Part shown: positions 7,720 through 45,199 of the stretch, piece by piece
How the letters are laid out: every line of letters begins with the position of its first letter
Numbering within the stretch: position 1 is the first letter of the stretch
From: Saccharolobus solfataricus P2
GTDB lineage: Archaea > Thermoproteota > Thermoprotei_A > Sulfolobales > Sulfolobaceae
DNA: 64,000 bases
Reading direction: 5' to 3' (one strand)
NCBI RefSeq assembly: GCF_000007005.1
Contig: NC_002754.1
Made by a program: the position numbers and the translations under genes
The notes under the pieces: generated by a model
Seen by the model: the letters and a program-made list of their open reading frames with translations, nothing else
The model's database searches: none
What the model was told of the DNA's origin: nothing

Positions 7720-8101
7720 GTGTTTACCCGTGGCGTAACTTCTGCTTACTTTTAACCACTTCTAATTCCGTCACGGGCACCCCTCTTGAGGGCTCATACA
7801 CACTCACCCTCAACTCATTGGGGCTAGTCGAGGGAAACACCACTACCCTCTCATCCGTATTTGTCGCTAAGTTGAGAGGTGCTATCGAATCCCTCTCTAA
7901 TAAAACGTCGCCAGCGTCCAAATACCTAGCAGTAACCTTAACTACTTTAATACCCCTACTCTCGTGAGCATAGCCCGTCATCAGTATGGAGTTCATCAAT
8001 TTATAATGTAGAGGAAATAATATATAAACATAATCATAATAAAGATCATATTGTGAAATGATTAAAAGTATTTAAAAATTATGCAAATGTGTTACAGTCT
8101 T
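7720..8101 (-). repeat. dispersed 382-bp element, copy 1 (AT-rich leader plus 91-aa GC-rich ORF)
   Basis: Near-identical to 44902-45199 in reverse orientation. Confidence 0.8.
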
Positions 8102-10539: not shown

Positions 10540-10749
10540 GCTTAAGATATAGAAATTTGAACAAAGACATTATTTTAGAAAAGCTTATGTGAAAGGGTTT
10601 ACGAGGCTCATTCTAGTACGACCACAAAAAGATTTCATAACCCTCGCACATGAGCTTTTCAGAGGCCGTTTTTCACGTTCTAATTCCTTAGCTACATCTC
10701 GATTAAAACGACTAATTGTGAAAATTTCTAGTTTAATTTAATTTTACTA
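10540..10749. repeat. about 200-bp non-coding repeat, arm A, with internal 22-bp inverted pair (10578-10599/10639-10660)
   Basis: 10641-10749 is the reverse complement of 12987-13095 at high identity. 10540-10640 aligns more loosely to 15361-15450. Confidence 0.8.
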
Positions 10750-10938: not shown

Positions 10939-12333
10939 ATGGAAATGGCAATCTATTGCGGTAAAACATACAGTTGGGCAAACGAACTTTGCAGTAAGCC
11001 ACTTAAGGAGGTAAAAGTCGTAGATTATAATTCAGTAGTTGATTGGGTTAACTCTCAAAAAGAGAGGGCTTTCCTAATTTTCGGTACGGACGTTATTCCA
11101 TATTCCCTATATGAATATCCTAAAATACCCGTAAATGAGACCCCGCTATTTAAATTTATGGAAAGAGGAGGTGTTGTAATTTGGACTGGCGATGTCCCCT
11201 TTTTCTACATCGAGAAGGATGGTATAAAAAAGGAGCTCTTTAGTAAGGGAAATCCTTTCCCTTTTAAGCCTATAAGCGTAATGGGACATAAACCTCTGTC
11301 TGAGAAGAGTGAAAATTCCATAGTGGGTGAAATGTTAAAATATGATCCTAAAGATTCGTGGAGACCCGTTGAACCTCATCCCTTGTTAATACCCATAAGT
11401 ATAGTAAAGAGCCATCCTTACACGCTTTATTCCACCTGGATTTACAAATACGGTAAAGGAGCATTTGTCAGGCTTTACGACTCTCCTTATGTAAACACTC
11501 AGTATATATTAAGCTTACCGGAACGACTGTCAAGCCTGGGAATTGGAATTAGGATAAGTAATTTTAGAAGGTTTAGGGATTTCAAGATGATTTTTCCAGA
11601 GTTTAAAATAGGGGTAATTCTGGGTAAGAATAACGTAGGGAAGACAACCATATTGGAAGCTATAGCAATGTTAGGTAAAAATGAGGATAAGATAAGGAAG
11701 TTCAGAGGGAATATCTCAACAGAAATTGCTGAAACCGAACTGTTTGTAAACTACACCTACTATAAGGCTGAGTTTTCCTACTCACAAGTTAATAGGTCTG
11801 CAGATGTGAACGTACTCTTAATATACTCCCACGATATTGACTTTGTGATTGACGATAAGGTACTCCCTTACGTGAAATCAAGTTTACGTAAAGTTACTGA
11901 ATTATTGAACTCATTTGACCCTAACATATTCTACGTTTATCTATCTTCTGGGAATGAACTTAGGGTGCTTTTTAATGACAGAACTGATGTGTCAATCAAC
12001 GAACTTGGTTATGGTTATAAGAGCTTATTGAATTTCATCTTGCTATATGTAATTTACCAGCCGAGAATTATTCTGATAGATGATCTGGAGGGCTTCGCAT
12101 TGCATCCGGATTTGCTTAAGATGTTCTATGATCTTCTACTGAAAATAGACGTTGACTTAATACTTATTACCACACAAAGCAGTGATATTTACGCGTATTT
12201 AGCTGAAAAGCGGTCGGATAAGGTTAGGTTTATATTAATTAACGATGATAAATATGAAGTTCTTACATCTGAGGAGGTTTTGGATAGGCTATACTATGAA
12301 GATTTAAGATATACTGCATTAAAAATACACTGA
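10939..12333 (+). CDS. AAA/ABC-type ATPase with extra about 200-aa N-terminal domain
   Basis: Walker A GKNNVGKT, signature LGYGYKSL, Walker B ILIDDLE..LHP. Confidence 0.8.
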   Translation: MEMAIYCGKTYSWANELCSKPLKEVKVVDYNSVVDWVNSQKERAFLIFGTDVIPYSLYEYPKIPVNETPLFKFMERGGVVIWTGDVPFFYIEKDGIKKELFSKGNPFPFKPISVMGHKPLSEKSENSIVGEMLKYDPKDSWRPVEPHPLLIPISIVKSHPYTLYSTWIYKYGKGAFVRLYDSPYVNTQYILSLPERLSSLGIGIRISNFRRFRDFKMIFPEFKIGVILGKNNVGKTTILEAIAMLGKNEDKIRKFRGNISTEIAETELFVNYTYYKAEFSYSQVNRSADVNVLLIYSHDIDFVIDDKVLPYVKSSLRKVTELLNSFDPNIFYVYLSSGNELRVLFNDRTDVSINELGYGYKSLLNFILLYVIYQPRIILIDDLEGFALHPDLLKMFYDLLLKIDVDLILITTQSSDIYAYLAEKRSDKVRFILINDDKYEVLTSEEVLDRLYYEDLRYTALKIH

Positions 12334-12932
12334 TGAAATTCAGCAGTAATGCTACAACCGAAATAGTTTTTGGAGACGGATCTTTTGATAGGGAGATTGT
12401 CAGAAACGCTCTTGAGAAGAACAAGGATAAATACTGTGAGCTATTACTGTTTATTCCGGAGAGCGGTGCTAAGGGTAAAAGTTTGCCTATAGGTATTGGG
12501 ATTGAGAGTGTACTTAAGTTTGTTAAAAACGATGTTAAGAGATTCTCCTTGAACTACATAATATTTATAGATAAGGAACACTGTACCTTAGATTATGTAG
12601 AATGCGTAAAGGAAACTGCAAAAGATTACGGAATATACACATCTGACGTGATAAAGCTTAACAATGAATATGATATTTATAGATTTTCATGTTCAGTAGG
12701 AAGTAAAAAATTTCGTATGTACTTCGTCTTTCTCGGATATTATTGCTGTATTGAGGACTTTATTTTAAAAATTTGTAATGAGCAGATAAAAGAATTTAGA
12801 GGCAGAGGATGCTGTCAAGAATATAAAAAGGAGTTAAAAAAGATAAAAGATAACTGCATAGAAAAGGCTATTGACGAACTATTCAAGGAAATAGAAAATG
12901 TGTTAAAGGATATAAGGCAAACTTCCAAATAA
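12333..12932 (+). CDS. Cys-rich putative TOPRIM-like (DUF3226/DUF4276-type) ATPase partner
   Basis: Coupled to the ATPase. IVFGDGSFD, IFIDKE and CIEDF resemble (V)EG..D, DxD and LED motifs; 10 Cys. Confidence 0.45.
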   Translation: MKFSSNATTEIVFGDGSFDREIVRNALEKNKDKYCELLLFIPESGAKGKSLPIGIGIESVLKFVKNDVKRFSLNYIIFIDKEHCTLDYVECVKETAKDYGIYTSDVIKLNNEYDIYRFSCSVGSKKFRMYFVFLGYYCCIEDFILKICNEQIKEFRGRGCCQEYKKELKKIKDNCIEKAIDELFKEIENVLKDIRQTSK

Positions 12933-12986
12933 CACTCTCTAAATTATAGGGAGTGTTCTCATGCAGTCATCTTATTCGATATCATA

Positions 12987-13095
12987 TAGTAAAATAAAAT
13001 TAAACTAGAAATTTTCACAATTAATCGTTTCGATCGAGATGTAGCTAAGGAATTAGAACATGAAAACAGCCTCTGAAAAAGCTTATGTGCGAGGG
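12987..13095. repeat. non-coding repeat arm B, continues at 15361-15450 after the IS110 insertion
   Basis: Reverse complement of 10641-10749; the rejoined flanks gtgcgagggttacgag match arm A gtgcgagggttatgaa. Confidence 0.75.
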
Positions 13096-13552
13096 CGTTC
13101 AGTAATAAATCTTTCGGTCGAATTTTGAGCATAGTATCAGCTACTATTGCCACGCGGACTCTTTCAATCCGCGTGATAGGGGAGGGTCACTTCACCTCAT
13201 AAGGCTTATTATTATACCAAACACTCCACACTATCCTAGCCAACTTCCTAGCTAAGGCAGTGTACAGTTTCCTACCCTTCAGTTTGTCCTTGTGAGCTTC
13301 GTGGAGCTTAAGGAGAGTAGGGTTACGCGAATATTGAGTCTCGGCAAGGAAATAAAACAAGCTACGCAAATACTTGTTACCCCTCTTGGAGATACCCTTT
13401 CTAACCTCAATCCTACCACTCCTCTCAACTACCGGGTCTAAACCGCAATAAGCAACGAAGGATTCAGGTCTTGGGAAGCGCCTAATATCACCCACAATCC
13501 CAATTATAATCCCAGCTGCCAGTTTCCCTATTCCGGAAATCGTGAGTAACAC

Positions 13553-14601
13553 TAGTATTTCCGGAAAGTTCTTAGACTTCAATTTTATCTAATCCTAGGT
13601 ATGTTATTGCATTAAGATTAAATCTATACTTATTTTCTTCAAAGAACTGTTTAATACAGTTTTTAACGTCTTCTATCGTATAGAATATTTTATTGCTCAT
13701 GTAGTTCTTGAGGGACTTGAAGACCGCCTCAGCCATATTAAGCTCAGGCGAGTAAGGAGGAGTAAACACGGGATGAATACCCTTCCTGCGACAAACCTCA
13801 AGCGTACCCTTAGTCTTGTGAGGAGAGTAATTATCCATGACCATGTAAACCCTACCACTACCCACACGCCTCTTAAAGTACCTCAAGAAATACTTAACGG
13901 ATTCAGAGTTAGGCCTTTTAGCAAGAGAAACCACTACTTCGCCGGTCCAAGCGTTTATAGCTAGAATAACATAGATTGAGGAAAAACCTATATTGACGCG
14001 CATTACGGGCTTACTGCCAACCTTAGCTAGAACCTTCTTAATTGACGTGCTAATTACTGTCCTACACTCGTCTAGAAAGAATAGTGCCTTTCTTTCCAAT
14101 TTCTTTATTTTTTTTAAAATCTTCCCACTTGTCCTTTTCTGCTTGGATGTTGGTAGGTCTGGGTTTTACTAGGTTGTATCCTAGTTCGTGGACTAGTTCG
14201 TATAGTCTGGATTTCTTGTATTCTATTCCTTGTTCTTGTAGTGCTATCTTGAGTGTTTTCATTGTCCAGTACTCTTGTTGTATTCCGTATTTTTGGGGCT
14301 TATCTTCCAGAATTTGTTTTATCTTTTCCTCTTCTACTTTTCTGGGTCTTCCTGATCTGGGCTTGTCCTTTAGTCCATCAAGACCTTCTTTCTTGTACTT
14401 GCCAATCCACAATTTTATCGTGGAATAGCCCTTGTTAAGCATTTTCGAAACTTCTTTCTCCGATTTACCATCAACTACGTGCAGCTTCACCGCAAGAATC
14501 CTCTCCTTAATTCTCGCGTTCTTCTCTTCCTTATAAGCTTGAACCAAATCTTGCATAGTTCAATCTGGTAATACTAATCTATAAACTTTTCGGAAACACT
14601 A
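13553..14601 (-). mobile_element. IS630-family ISC1048-like element
   Basis: TIRs tagtatttccggaaagtt / aacttttcggaaacacta, 1049 bp. HTH orfA 14062-14556 and DDE orfB 13572-14099 are joined by a TTTTAAAAAAAA -1 slippery site (14108-14119). Confidence 0.9.
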
Positions 14602-15185
14602 ACGTGGTCTTGAGGCACATTACCCTCTATCATTTTCCTCACCTCCTTCAACTCTTCTCGTGTTTGAATTAGTGTCCTCGCTAGGACTTGAATCTCACGT
14701 AGTACTGTACCAGTGTATTCCAGTTGATACAGTTTTACGTCAGAGAAGTCTCCCTTAGAGAACTTCTCCAATCTCTCCTCGCTCAACTTCTCCTCGTCGC
14801 TCACGAGGAAGAGAGCTCTCCTTAACCTGTTCTCTTGTTTCGTTTGCACATCCTTCATGAAGAGGTAGAGTGATACTAACTCTTTCAAGGGGTTGTTAAC
14901 GTATTCTCTAGACTTATTTACCATGTTTTCAAGTTTTTCTGCGTCGTAAAAATCTGTTTTCTTCCCCTTACGTCCTTTTCTTTCCATAGCAAGGCTGACT
15001 AGTAGGACTTTCACTCCTCTTTCTTTGAAGTATTGGCAAGGTCTTGTTGAGTATACTCCTGTGGGTTCTATTACGATGATGTTTGGCTTCATGGTTAGTA
15101 TTTCTTCGTAGCCCTTCTCGTTGTTTGTGAATTTTCTCACCCTCCCCTTACTTGTTACCAAGTGTTCTTTTGATACGTCTATTCC

Positions 15186-15345
15186 AATTACCCCTACGCT
15201 TGTGTCACACCTATATTCGTGAATATTTTCACAATGTTCAGTCCGACTGTAGGGGCTCGTCACGCCCTCGCCCGAAGACTTTGCTTCAATTTCCCATTCG
15301 ACCATTTTTCCCCAGCTGAGGAGAATATTACTCTCCCCAGCTAAT
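15186..15345 (-). ncRNA. candidate IS110 bridge RNA
   Basis: Two parallel gtc...gac loops with internal hairpins. Guide segments match the element end junction (actgaac, atatagg) and the right target flank (gcgaggg). Confidence 0.65.
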
Positions 15346-15464
15346 TAACCTATATATAGGTTACGAGATTTTTTGTGAGGGTTACCAATATGAACCTCGT
15401 AACCCTCGCACAATTAATACTTATGATTCTAAGAAATTTAAATCTTAAGCCGAGAAAGTACGAG

Positions 15465-15648
15465 TAGCATTTATAGGAAAATCGTTACACTTTTACGTTA
15501 CGTTAAAAATATATAGTAAATCTTTCCTGGTTAGATGAAAAATGCTTATTGATAAGCTATAATATTAAGAAGTACAATGAAAGATATTTATAAATACATG
15601 GATAAATATTTTGACTTTTTATGGTAAGGGAATATCCTAAAACTACTA
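15465..15648 (+). mobile_element. SM2-type MITE (184 bp), no TSD
   Basis: Near-identical to 48976-49159; ends tagcatttataggaaaatc / gaatatcctaaaactacta resemble ISC1217 ends. Confidence 0.85.
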
Positions 15649-16567
15649 ATAGGATAAAGCCAACTAAGGGGACGTCGTGGGGACTGGTTCAAGCCGCGAT
15701 CTTCCTCCTGGGGAGGACGAGGAGCTTCCTGGACGTGATCCCAGTGACCGTGAAGAACGTAGCTGAAGGTTTCAAGGCGGTGATGGAGGTAATCGTGAAG
15801 GAGTTGGAGGAGGACAAGCTGAGGCTCGTCATGGTCTTCGCGGACAAGGAGTTCGCAGTGAACGAAGTGATTAGATACCTCTTGGAGTTGGGCTTGGACT
15901 TCGTCATATCTGCCAAGGTCCAGATGTACAAGAAGTACAAGGGAATGTTGCAGGATGTGGATGTGAGTTTTGGCGGAGTTAGATATACTGGATTTCTCTG
16001 CGTGAGATATGGGAGTGGAGCTTATCTCATTATCCTGAGGAAGGAAGACGGCAAGATTATTGCCTTCCTCGTGAGGAGGGAGATGGATCTTTATGATGCC
16101 ATAGTCCTTGCCGAGATGTACAGGGAGAGGTGGGGGATAGAGAACGCCTTCCGCTCTCTTGAGGAGTTCAGGATCAGGACTAGGACTTGTGACGTGAGGA
16201 AGGAACTGGTTCTCGTTCTGCTTTCCTATCTTCTCTTGAATGTCTGGTTCTTGATCCGCTCTTGGAGGAAGGTAAAGTTGTGGGAGTTCTCGGTCTCCCT
16301 CTCGAATCTCCTCGATCGGGAGGTAAGAGTGGAACAAGGACGCGCGTTCCGTGAAGTGAAGACGCCATTCCCCTAAACTCCAGCTAACCCTATGCACCTC
16401 CTTCCAGCTACGTGAAATTAATTCTATATATTTATATTCTGCTATTGAAAACTGACTTATTAACTGTCATTTTCATAAAATATATGCAGTTATATTTGAA
16501 TAAAACTGGTGCGGTTCAATCTTACATATATTATCATTTATATCAGAAAAATGAGATTCCCATACTG
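15649..16567 (+). mobile_element. 5'-truncated ISC1359 (ISH3/IS4-like DDE)
   Basis: Matches the 59315 and 61250 copies; right TIR gagattcccatactg; RWGIENAFR motif. Confidence 0.88.
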
Positions 16568-17000
16568 AAGTCAAACATCATCGTGATAGAACCCACCGGA
16601 GTATACTCAACGAGACCTTGCCAATACTTCAAAGAAAGAGGAGTGAAAGTCCTACTAGTCAGCCTTGCTATGGAAAGAAAAGGACATAAGGGGAAAGAAA
16701 ACAGATTTTTACGACGCAGAAAAACTTGAAAACATGGTAAATAATGCTAGAGAATACGTTAACAACCCCTTGAAAGAGTTAGTATCACTCTACCTCTTCA
16801 TGAAGGATGTGCAAACGAAACAAGAGAACAGGTTAAGGAGAGCTCTCTTCCTCGTGAGCGACGAGGAGAAGTTGAGCGAGGAGAGATTGGAGAAGTTCTC
16901 TAAGGGAGACTTCTCTGACGTAAAACTGTATCAACTGGAATACACTGGTACAGTACTACGTGAGATTCAAGTCCTAGCGAGGACACTACTTCAAACACGA
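16568..17000 (+). pseudogene. internal fragment of a second IS110 copy
   Basis: Near-identical to 14660-15090 on the opposite strand; frameshift near 16685. Confidence 0.85.
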
Positions 17001-18209
17001 GACGTTGTCCGATTTGAGCAAAATTAAAAACCATTATAATTACAACATCTCAGATTATACTATTCTTCATTATATTCAAGTATAAAAAATAATATAATAT
17101 GTATTAATAAGGGAAAATACAGATAATTGTACAATTTTGCAATAAAATTTATCATAACAACAAGTAAACACGTAAACGAACCTCGTTAATTAACGAGTAC
17201 CTTCGTCCTAATCCTCGTCGAAAGAATTTCGAGATCACGATAGAGGTTAAGGAAGAATACCTCCATAACCACTCCCCTTAAGGTTGTAGACGAAGCCTTA
17301 CCTTCCCTAATCTCAACACCACTACCCTCAACCGGAAGTCCAGCACTACCAACACCCTTAACTAAGACGTCCTCCCTAAAAATCCAAGCCCTATCGGCCA
17401 TTAACTTAACGTTATCAAATGAAAAGGCTAGATCCCTCAAATTAGCCAATCCAACCTTGAAGCCCCTAACGAAATTAGTCCTCCTTTCCACAAGGTTACA
17501 GACCTTAAACCCGAAGTAGGACTTACCGTGCTTCCTACCCCAACCCTTATACTTCCTAAAGGCTGTGAAGCTCTTGAGCTTGGAAGTAGTATAACCCATG
17601 AGGAGAAAAACGTCATTGAACCCCATCTCCTTAAGGTCAAGTGAGATCTTCTCAAGACCGTTTTGAAGACTCCTCTTTCCTGGGTAGGCTTCACGGAAGA
17701 ATGTGTCAATTATGTGGTAGTCCTCGAACCTATCGTTTTTTCTCTCCCAACTTCAAGTTCAAAGCCCTTTTCCCTATACTCGCTGATCGCCTTGTCCAAA
17801 GCCTTGTTTAACTCATCCATCAGTGTTGTTCTCATCGTCTCGCCCTCTTGAATAACTGTTTGTTGTAGTTTCTTGTAGAAGGAGAATACTGTGCTCTTTG
17901 GTGGAATTTTCCCGCCCAAGAAGTCCATAAACCTCTTACTGTCCCTAATTTCTCCCTCCAAGTTATTCCAAGAGATGTCGAAAATGAGCTTGATTAGGAG
18001 GACTTTGAGGAGTGAGATGACGTTCCACTTGGGCTTCTTGGAGTAAAGGGACTTAAGCTTACTCCTAAACGTTTCTCAAGGGAAGGATTTATCTACCTTG
18101 AGTAAGAGGTCCTTTTCAGTTGAAATTGCCTTTACCATAATATTATCTCATCCTAATTTCTTATTAATATTACTCATGAATTGCCATTTTAATCAACTTG
18201 GATAACGTC
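17001..18209 (-). mobile_element. ISC1212 (IS5 family) copy 1
   Basis: TIRs gacgttgtccgatttgagc / aatcaacttggataacgtc; stop codon in orfA; flanks acga/gcga do not match. Confidence 0.88.
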
Positions 18210-44901: not shown

Positions 44902-45199
44902 AAGACTGTAACACATTTGCATAACTTTTAAATACTTTTAATCATTTCACAATATGATCTTTATTATGATTATGTTTATATATTATTTCCTCTACATTAT
45001 AAATTGATGAACTCCATACTGATGACGGGCTATGCTCACGAGGTATTGGGGGCGACAAATACGGATGGGAGGGTAGTGGTGTTTCCCTCGACTAGCCCCA
45101 ATGAGTTGAGGGTGAGTGTGTATGAGCCCTCAAGAGGGGTGCCCGTGGCGGAATTAGAAGTGGTTAAAAGTAAGCAGAAGTTACGCCACGGGTAAACAC
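44902..45199 (+). repeat. dispersed element copy 2 (298 bp)
   Basis: Equals 7720-8101 minus an 84-bp in-frame deletion. Confidence 0.8.

Follow-up and report, generated by a model that had tools for sequence, protein, structure and literature searches.

RNA-guided recombination by members of the insertion sequence (IS) family IS110 has been described for IS621 from Escherichia coli, in which a bridge RNA acts together with its recombinase (Durrant et al. 2024, PMC11208160; Hiraizumi et al. 2024, PMC11208158; PDB 8wt6), and a structure is also available for ISCro4 (PDB 9t56). In the bridge RNA of IS621 the first loop recognizes the target and the second loop the donor, the 3' side of a loop pairs with the top strand, and the core is part of the pairing (PMC11208160). 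Target and donor loops can come from different RNA molecules (PMC11208158). For ISPpu10 from Pseudomonas putida, a stem-loop in the target ("dual-match") is a proven extra determinant of insertion (bioRxiv 10.64898/2026.03.19.712850), and ISPpu9 targets repetitive extragenic palindromic (REP) sequences (PMC12288879). Copy-out and trans pathways have been studied for CazIS110-1 (bioRxiv 10.1101/2025.10.25.684509). ISC1229 is known as an IS110 element, and its protein is contained in the supplementary alignments of Durrant et al. (PMC11208160); a description of an archaeal or ISC1229 bridge RNA was not found in the searchable literature. The ISC1229 copy considered here occupies the minus strand from 15360 to 13096 of a 64,000-nucleotide stretch of Saccharolobus solfataricus P2 (NC_002754.1), the whole of which is called the window below. 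The left end of ISC1229 very probably encodes a bridge RNA of the IS621 type, the window copy being a relic with a mosaic target loop.

The relatives of this IS110-family element carry the database names ISC1229 or "IS110 family RNA-guided transposase." Complete-genome copies were gathered individually, one protein each; a profile search of genome contigs with the protein alignment gave 3 loci, none of them from Saccharolobus. The ends at 13096 and 15360, as proposed in the first-pass annotation of this sequence, prove exact and have a CC core on both sides. A CC stands between the element and each of the flanks, ...ATCTCGTAA on the left and CTCGCACA... on the right. Joined through a single CC, these flanks give a sequence whose alignment to an unoccupied paralogue in the window continues through the junction. 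An intact copy, L049, occupies the same site in another S. solfataricus strain, and the termini CC-TATATAGG...TTATTACTGAACG-CC are common to 45 metagenomic and 14 genomic loci. The two ends are thus confirmed by the empty paralogue, the same-site copy, and the shared termini of the relatives. Empty sites of the target used by one group of relatives (the L001 group) likewise contain a single CC. Inverted repeats, whether terminal or subterminal, were not seen in the element. The ends and the empty site are made up as follows.

15359 to 15360, minus strand: left CC core dinucleotide, with one CC in empty sites and one per side in occupied sites.
15349 to 15358, minus strand: left-end terminus TATATATAGG, the right donor half, also TATA-box-like; kept in all relatives and, with the core, complementary to the 3' guide of the donor loop.
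13096 to 13103, minus strand: right-end terminus ACTGAACG, the left donor half; 7 nucleotides are identical to the 5' guide of the donor loop.
13089 to 13095, minus strand: right CC core copy and right target CTCGC, complementary (7/7) to the right target guide of the window copy.
10588 to 10749, plus strand: unoccupied paralogue of the target-bearing repeat, ...GATTTCATAA-CC-CTCGCACATGAGC..., with 86% identity over 164 nucleotides to the joined flanks.

On the minus strand, the left end (about 15347-15190) contains a 5' hairpin, a target-binding loop, and a donor-binding loop, directly followed by the IGIDVSK motif of the recombinase.

15312 to 15344, minus strand: 5' stem-loop SL1 of 15 bp, from the fold, with compensatory exchanges between UA and CG (10 sequences) and between CG and UA (7 sequences).
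15259 to 15302, minus strand: target-binding loop module (module 1), from the alignment; its guides are the sole hypervariable columns and follow the flanks.
Parts of module 1, minus strand: outer stem GUCG/UGAC; left target guide AAUGGGAAAU, 15298-15289; inner hairpin, 15289-15272; right target guide GCGAGGG, 15271-15265; putative handshake dinucleotide CG, 15264-15263.
15191 to 15255, minus strand: donor-binding loop module (module 2) including its closing stem, nearly invariant in 29 distinct sequences.
Parts of module 2, minus strand: closing stem CCCCUAC, 15255-15249, with GUAGGGG, 15197-15191; left donor guide ACUGAAC, 15242-15236; inner hairpin, 15234-15217; right donor guide AUAUAGG, 15216-15210; putative handshake dinucleotide UG, 15209-15208.

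Module 1 reads GTCG-AAUGGGAAAU-(UUGAAG CAAAGU CUUCGG)-GCGAGGG-CG-UGAC from 15302 to 15259 and module 2 reads GTCG-GACUGAACAU-(UGUGA AAAUAU UCACG)-AAUAUAGG-UG-UGAC from 15247 to 15204. Both are built on one scaffold of GUC, 11 nucleotides, a 5-bp hairpin with a 6-nucleotide loop, 8 nucleotides, and YGUGAC. The two parallel loops that had been read from the letters alone, the second closed by cccctac/gtagggg, are found with every string in place. The 181-nucleotide left end folds with -58.5 kcal/mol (z = -4.3 against dinucleotide shuffles). Across the 29 distinct sequences, 93.8% of the cells of the 42 proposed pairs are paired, compared to ∼45% when the partners are slid, which places the conservation of the scaffold far beyond chance. 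Six pairs are changed on both sides; SL1 and, in the donor loop, the outer stem and the inner hairpin all show compensatory changes.

The donor loop matches the joined ends of the element on both sides, in agreement with the earlier proposal. Its 5' side reads ACTGAAC, exactly as do the last bases of the element (13103-13097). Its 3' side reads ATATAGG and is thereby complementary to CCTATAT (15360-15354), the CC core followed by TATAT. This match to both ends is found in the window copy and in every relative, with donor guides and element ends essentially invariant across the family. The right target guide is followed by GGCG, the complement of the final CG of the donor plus the CC core, and both sequences are invariant. 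The position of the CG equals that of the handshake guide of IS621 (PMC11208158). The UG of the donor loop would pair with CA or NA before the core, which is present at many sites (CA in the L001 group and AA here) and absent from others.

ISC1229 is a new archaeal, thermoacidophilic case of the known bridge RNA/IS110 system. In common with IS621 and ISCro4, it carries the RNA in the left end, upstream of a recombinase with DEDD and Tnp domains, with the 5' hairpin, the target loop, and the donor loop in this order. The 5' guides have the sequence of the top strand and the 3' guides its complement, a 2-nucleotide core stands on either side of the element, the right target guide is followed by a dinucleotide that could pair with the donor as a handshake guide would, and the catalytic D/E/D/D and Ser-Gly residues are kept. 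The strand logic of IS621 bridge RNAs, already recognized in the first-pass annotation, applies here by the published rules, with target guides that follow the insertion sites and a donor loop that reads the ends. In contrast to IS621, the core is CC instead of CT, the modules are near-duplicates of one compact scaffold, and sequence similarity between the two is recognizable in the Tnp domain only (E = 2e-11). With an archaeal thermoacidophile as the host, any promoter formed at the junction would have to resemble the archaeal factor B recognition element (BRE) and TATA box rather than a sigma-70 promoter. ISC1229 hosts grow at about 75 to 80°C and pH 2 to 4. By description, CazIS110-1 is likewise a bridge-RNA element from a thermophile, Caloranaerobacter azorensis; its host is a bacterium, whereas that of ISC1229 is an archaeon. 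IS1111-group elements reportedly have their RNA downstream of the transposase gene and are said to carry subterminal inverted repeats. The RNA of ISC1229, in contrast, lies upstream of the catalytic domain, the arrangement of the IS110 group, and no subterminal inverted repeats are seen. The seekRNA of the IS1111 group (Siddiquee et al. 2024, PMC11187229) likewise guides a DEDD transposase and has segments that match both the ends of the element and its target.

Further evidence comes from the target loops of the family. Among the 29 distinct sequences aligned, hypervariable columns occur only at the guides of loop 1, ∼9 nucleotides on the 5' side and ∼6 nucleotides on the 3' side, and these guides follow the sequences next to the insertions. 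The left guide of a copy matches its own left flank at 7 or more of 9 positions in 13 of 26 nonredundant pairs, compared to 3.9% of mismatched pairings (binomial, 3e-12). For the right guide, at least 5 of 6 noncore positions match in 7 of 22 pairs, compared to 0.9% of mismatched pairings (binomial, 6e-10). The first-pass annotation had named insertion sites of sister copies that do not follow loop 1 as grounds for abandoning the idea; in independent lineages, the sites of sister copies follow loop 1 in these proportions. The Acidianus manzaensis copy L061 fits completely, with GAGGGGAAC and GCGAGGG against GAGGGGAA-CC-CTCGCC (9/9 and 8/8). The copy from Sulfolobus sp. E5-1-F (L051) fits with 8/9 and 8/8, and two further copies from complete genomes (L050 and L056) fit with 7/9 and 7/8 each. 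The L001 group, known from hot-spring metagenomes, carries GAGGGAAAC and GUAGUGG against GAGGGAAACA-CC-ACTACC, with L001 itself reaching 9/9 and 8/8. The target of this group is unoccupied in L014 and twice within the window. The core of the L001 group was also considered as AC; this is ruled out by the empty sites GTCGAGGGAAACA-CC-ACTACC, which support CC.

The two empty copies in the window, GTCGAGGGAAACA-CC-ACTACCCTC at 7832-7848 (plus strand) and ∼45071-45087 (minus strand), are exact L001-group targets and sit inside another repeat (...cattggggctagtcgag...).

The site of the window copy has a structure of its own. The reconstructed empty site, inside a genomic repeat of ∼250 nucleotides, folds as DNA into a 20-bp hairpin (-21 kcal/mol, z = -9.3) whose 3' arm contains the CC crossover.

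15361 to 15369, minus strand: left target ATCTCGTAA, abutting the core; matched 10/10, including the first core C, by the left guide of the sister copy L059 and 3/9 by that of the window copy.
15396 to 15412, minus strand: left arm of the inverted repeat of the target, TGTGCGAGGGTTACGAG; on the plus strand, a second, unoccupied target CTCGTAA-CC-CTCGCACA.
Predicted target partner for the donor junction: ATCTCGTAACCCTCGC.

This arrangement resembles that of ISPpu10 and ISPpu9, in which one insertion position is used in multiple copies of a conserved intergenic repeat and the stem-loop of the repeat lies just 5' of the crossover; the ISC1229 target is the 3' arm of its hairpin. Compared to ISPpu10, the role of the hairpin in ISC1229 targeting is only putative. 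In the paralogue at 10588-10749, the hairpin is degenerate (z = -1.5) and the left target mismatches the left guide of L059 at two positions. The effects of hairpin and left target are confounded, because this sole empty paralogue in the window is defective in both. As an extra determinant of insertion at this site, the target hairpin is only a possibility. An alternative explanation at the DNA level is that the inverted repeats act as subterminal protein sites or as hairpins that the transposase recognizes, with the target chosen by protein-DNA contacts. The hairpins of the left end exist in the DNA as well, the target itself is a strong DNA hairpin, and another IS110 element, ISPpu10, is known to use a target stem-loop in addition to its guides. 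Such an explanation is very improbable nonetheless. In both loops, and for the sense strand only, guides and flanks agree in the two-strand manner in which bridge RNAs pair. The recombinase has homologues among the RNA-guided enzymes of solved structure, and IS110 elements lack terminal inverted repeats, none being seen here.

The catalytic part of the recombinase gene directly follows the donor loop, and the gene is interrupted in the window copy.

14602 to 15305, minus strand: N-terminal part of the transposase, with PF01548 (DEDD) at 15197-14574 and the IGIDVSK motif from ∼15185.
13553 to 14601, minus strand: IS630-type (ISC1048-like) insertion of 1,049 bp with TA duplication and Pfam HTH and DDE_3 domains; breakpoints taken from the intact L049.
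13187 to 13552, minus strand: C-terminal part of the transposase, with the Tnp domain (PF02371, 13582-13187) and the ERSG catalytic serine.

In alignments, the catalytic D, E, DxxD, and SG of ISCro4 and IS621 have their counterparts in the motifs IGIDVSK, IEPTG, KTDFYDAE, and ERSGR, with the SG of the window copy aligning with the S241-G242 region of the solved relatives. The split of its transposase by the IS630-type insertion makes the window copy a relic, which would be limited to action in trans; the recombinases of ISPpu10 and ISPpu9 can act in trans, a further likeness. Intact orthologues are P0001 and P0064, and the suggestion that a thermoacidophile bridge recombinase would be a useful tool fails for the window copy as it stands, with its split gene; these orthologues are candidates. 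An intact P2 copy, L057, carries a similar IS630-type element just 3' of its transposase gene.

The in-frame starts of the recombinase are restricted to ATG 15305, in the outer stem of the target loop, and GTG 15264, so that both lie within the target loop. The frame from ATG 15305 is open through the whole RNA into the DEDD motif in 31 of ∼40 distinct sequences, and the ∼8 stop triplets of the scaffold all fall outside this frame. Proteins of 355 to 357 amino acids predicted by gene callers include the bridge-RNA region. From the reading frame, the RNA sequence probably doubles as the 5' part of the recombinase open reading frame (ORF). The same facts could be taken to mean that the region is N-terminal transposase coding sequence and nothing else, in which case no guide RNA would exist and the loops would be fortuitous repeats of a conserved leader peptide; the stop-free frame, the position of GTG 15264 as the closest start to the DEDD motif, and the annotated proteins all agree with this. 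In the protein alignments, however, the hypervariable segments appear as "residues" 3 to 6 and 12 and 13, and the peptide varies only there, exactly where the guides copy or complement the flanks of each insertion, which coding constraint cannot explain. Lineages with frameshifting guide indels (the L003 type in 5 samples, L029, and L037/38/48) keep the RNA scaffold, and segments of the donor loop match the two ends of the element itself. Coding and RNA roles are compatible, and the frame may serve both. A purely coding origin of the loops has only a slight chance of being correct.

Several observations weigh against the assignment as a bridge RNA of the IS621 type. In about half of the loci, the resident guide fails to fit one flank or both. 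Such misfits include copies in the complete genome of S. islandicus L.S.2.15, where L053 fits on the left only, L054 on the right only, and L055 on neither side. The left guide of ∼9 nucleotides differs from that of IS621 in its register to the core, which varies among sublineages by up to 2 nucleotides (0 to 2); a single fixed register fails, and three are needed, ending at -2, -1, or the first core base. A second departure from IS621 is that the whole RNA lies inside an ORF continuous with the recombinase. The conservation of the scaffold is so high that stem covariation is limited. A scan of 12500-17500 with Rfam 15 (E ≤ 10) returned noise only, and no curated covariance model covers this RNA. 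Finally, the transcript ends and the promoter are predictions from the sequence.

Part of the misfits may result from misassembly of metagenomes across repeats. The guides and flanks of L013 and L027 look reciprocally swapped, and these two loci were treated as possible chimeric assemblies and not built on. Several flanks that the resident guide does not fit are fitted at 8 or 9 of 9 positions by the guide of another family member; left flanks CGCCCCCTTAA-CC, for example, are fitted 9/9 by the guides of L009 and L044. This suggests guidance in trans, guide exchange, or rearrangement between copies.

The window copy itself is a misfit of this kind. Its right guide GCGAGGG (15271-15265) is complementary at 7/7 positions to the CCCTCGC (13095-13089) of the right junction, as the first-pass annotation had stated for the real right flank, and its left guide AAUGGGAAAU matches the left flank at 3/9 positions. 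The poor left match had been entered there as a caveat. The mismatch is real; as a weakness of the model it does not hold, since it is a trait of the window copy and the guide of L059 fits 10/10. The accompanying idea that the CC core pairs as U:G has to be dropped, as the last "UU" of the left guide read at that time is the start of the inner stem and not a wobble-paired core. L059 is a sister copy in the same genome (LT549890.1:449489-454866). Its bridge RNA is identical to that of the window copy except for 6 left-guide bases and 2 other bases, and its target loop, AUCUCGUAAC and GCGAGGG, fits the window site ATCTCGTAA-CC-CTCGC with 10/10 and 7/7. The copy L049, at the same site in another strain, differs from the window copy at 5 positions over 2,252 nucleotides, all within 55 nucleotides of the bridge RNA, including 3 in the right guide; at this shared site the right guide of the window copy fits and that of L049 does not. 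These comparisons mark the target loops of the ISC1229 family as mosaics that change by short patches.

L057 sits at the same position in another copy of the ∼250-nucleotide repeat. L060 shares the left flank of L057 and has a right flank outside the repeat. The left guides of both are of the AUGGGAA type, likewise do not fit, and resemble the A. manzaensis guide GAGGGGAAC. The right guide is the fitting GCGAGGG in the window copy and L057 and GCAAGGG in L060. The four repeat-borne copies were also considered as one duplicated segment. Flank similarity ends ∼104 nucleotides to the left and ∼148 nucleotides to the right, the guides and protein variants differ, and the copies are separate occupied copies of one repeat. 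A home site for the left guide of the window copy, ATGGGAAAT-N-CC with up to 2 mismatches, gave 28 matches against 21 expected, and a pattern combining this left guide with the right guide of L049 gave no match; no home site is visible in the window.

Most probably, the site of the window copy was chosen by a target loop of the L059 type. In one version, the window copy once carried such a loop, and short-patch gene conversion later replaced the left guide. In the other, a sister copy with the same donor ends provided the loop in trans; these ends are identical in all ISC1229 copies considered here. Conversion is slightly favored, since comparison between strains reveals a conversion-like patch in this very copy. 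The insertion could instead have been made with the present loop as a "half-match," by the right guide only and possibly aided by the hairpin. Many off-target events of IS621 are half-matches (bioRxiv 10.64898/2026.08.31.748434), the window copy and L057 combine the fitting GCGAGGG with misfitting left guides in the same repeat, and L060 has their left flank and a misfitting left guide, here beside GCAAGGG. The one-sided fits of L053 and L054 also point in this direction. A half site of 7 nucleotides is, however, expected about every 16 kb, and yet these copies sit where the left guide of L059 fits 10/10. In addition, the window copy and L059 differ essentially in the left guide only, which resembles the replacement of a guide on one backbone. 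Insertion by half-match is accordingly an unlikely account of the left-guide misfit, and a loop of the L059 type is retained as the preferred one.

If the RNA is produced and works with the chemistry of IS621, as the comparison suggests, an excised or copied-out element would join its ends to ...ACTGAACG-CC-TATATATAGG... and the donor loop would read this junction. The target loop would read the genomic site by the same rule, and a tetramer of the DEDD/Ser recombinase would then exchange strands at the CC. The CG after the right target guide, complementary to the last two bases of the donor, would act as the handshake guide.

The right end contributes two further candidate features.

13102 to 13117, minus strand: BRE/TATA-like CCGAAAG-ATTTATTA-C, conserved in relatives.
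13151 to 13175, minus strand: right-end hairpin CACGCGG-ATTGAAAGAGT-CCGCGTG, whose loop contains the CRISPR-repeat-like ATTGAAAG.

In a circular form, CGAAAG-ATTTATTA would set the start of transcription at ∼15347-15344, just 5' of SL1. The loop sequence ATTGAAAG resembles the conserved 3' end of Sulfolobales CRISPR repeats. Strong binding of Cbp1 has been reported in the 3' part or 3' flank of ISC1229 (PMC10883916), and the hairpin at 13175-13151 is probably the reported binding site. In the metagenomic locus L007 (1808-1830), the right end is followed by CC-TATATAGGTTTT, which is left-end-like; this junction may be what is left of joined ends or of a tandem, or it may reflect insertion into a site resembling the donor.

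The surroundings of the window copy are dense in IS elements and repeats. A second ISC1229 copy, a 437-bp internal fragment at 16566-17002 (plus strand), is 98% identical to 15091-14656; it is 5'-truncated and without the bridge-RNA region and either end. An ORF for a DDE_Tnp_1 (IS4/IS5-type) transposase at 15621-16376 (plus strand) adjoins the left flank of ISC1229, and 100 nucleotides at 15560-15460 recur at 49071-48971 (95%). The target-bearing repeats at 10588-10749 (plus strand) and 13095-12934 (minus strand) flank, in inverted orientation, a two-gene cassette at 10939-12932, whose products are a 464-amino-acid AAA_15/AAA_21/AAA_23 ATPase and a 199-amino-acid protein. Bounded by inverted repeats, this cassette is possibly mobile or defense related.

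As far as searched, ISC1229 is the first worked archaeal example of a bridge RNA, with natural pairs of guide and target, empty sites, and a defined CC core. Since the hosts are thermoacidophiles, the intact orthologues P0001 and P0064 and the well-fitting Acidianus copy are candidates for heat-stable programmable recombination and for the genetics of Sulfolobales, and the duplicated compact modules would be handy for engineering. The element also shows guide loops that drift from their own sites, with about half of the loci misfitting on one side and the missing guide often present in a sister element, which bears on trans-mobilization and off-target behavior. A more far-reaching picture can be put forward only tentatively and is rather doubtful as a whole: the bridge RNA would lie entirely within the recombinase frame with the start codon in the target loop, reprogramming would rewrite residues 3 to 6 and 12 and 13 of the protein, and co-resident copies, with the same donor ends and with target loops that differ and recombine, would routinely be placed by each other's RNAs or swap guide halves. 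If true, the family would maintain a natural modular pool of guides at ∼80°C and low pH. ISC1229 further provides archaeal material for the proposed link of IS110 recombinases to Nop5 and the C/D-box guide RNAs (bioRxiv 10.1101/2024.06.21.599552).

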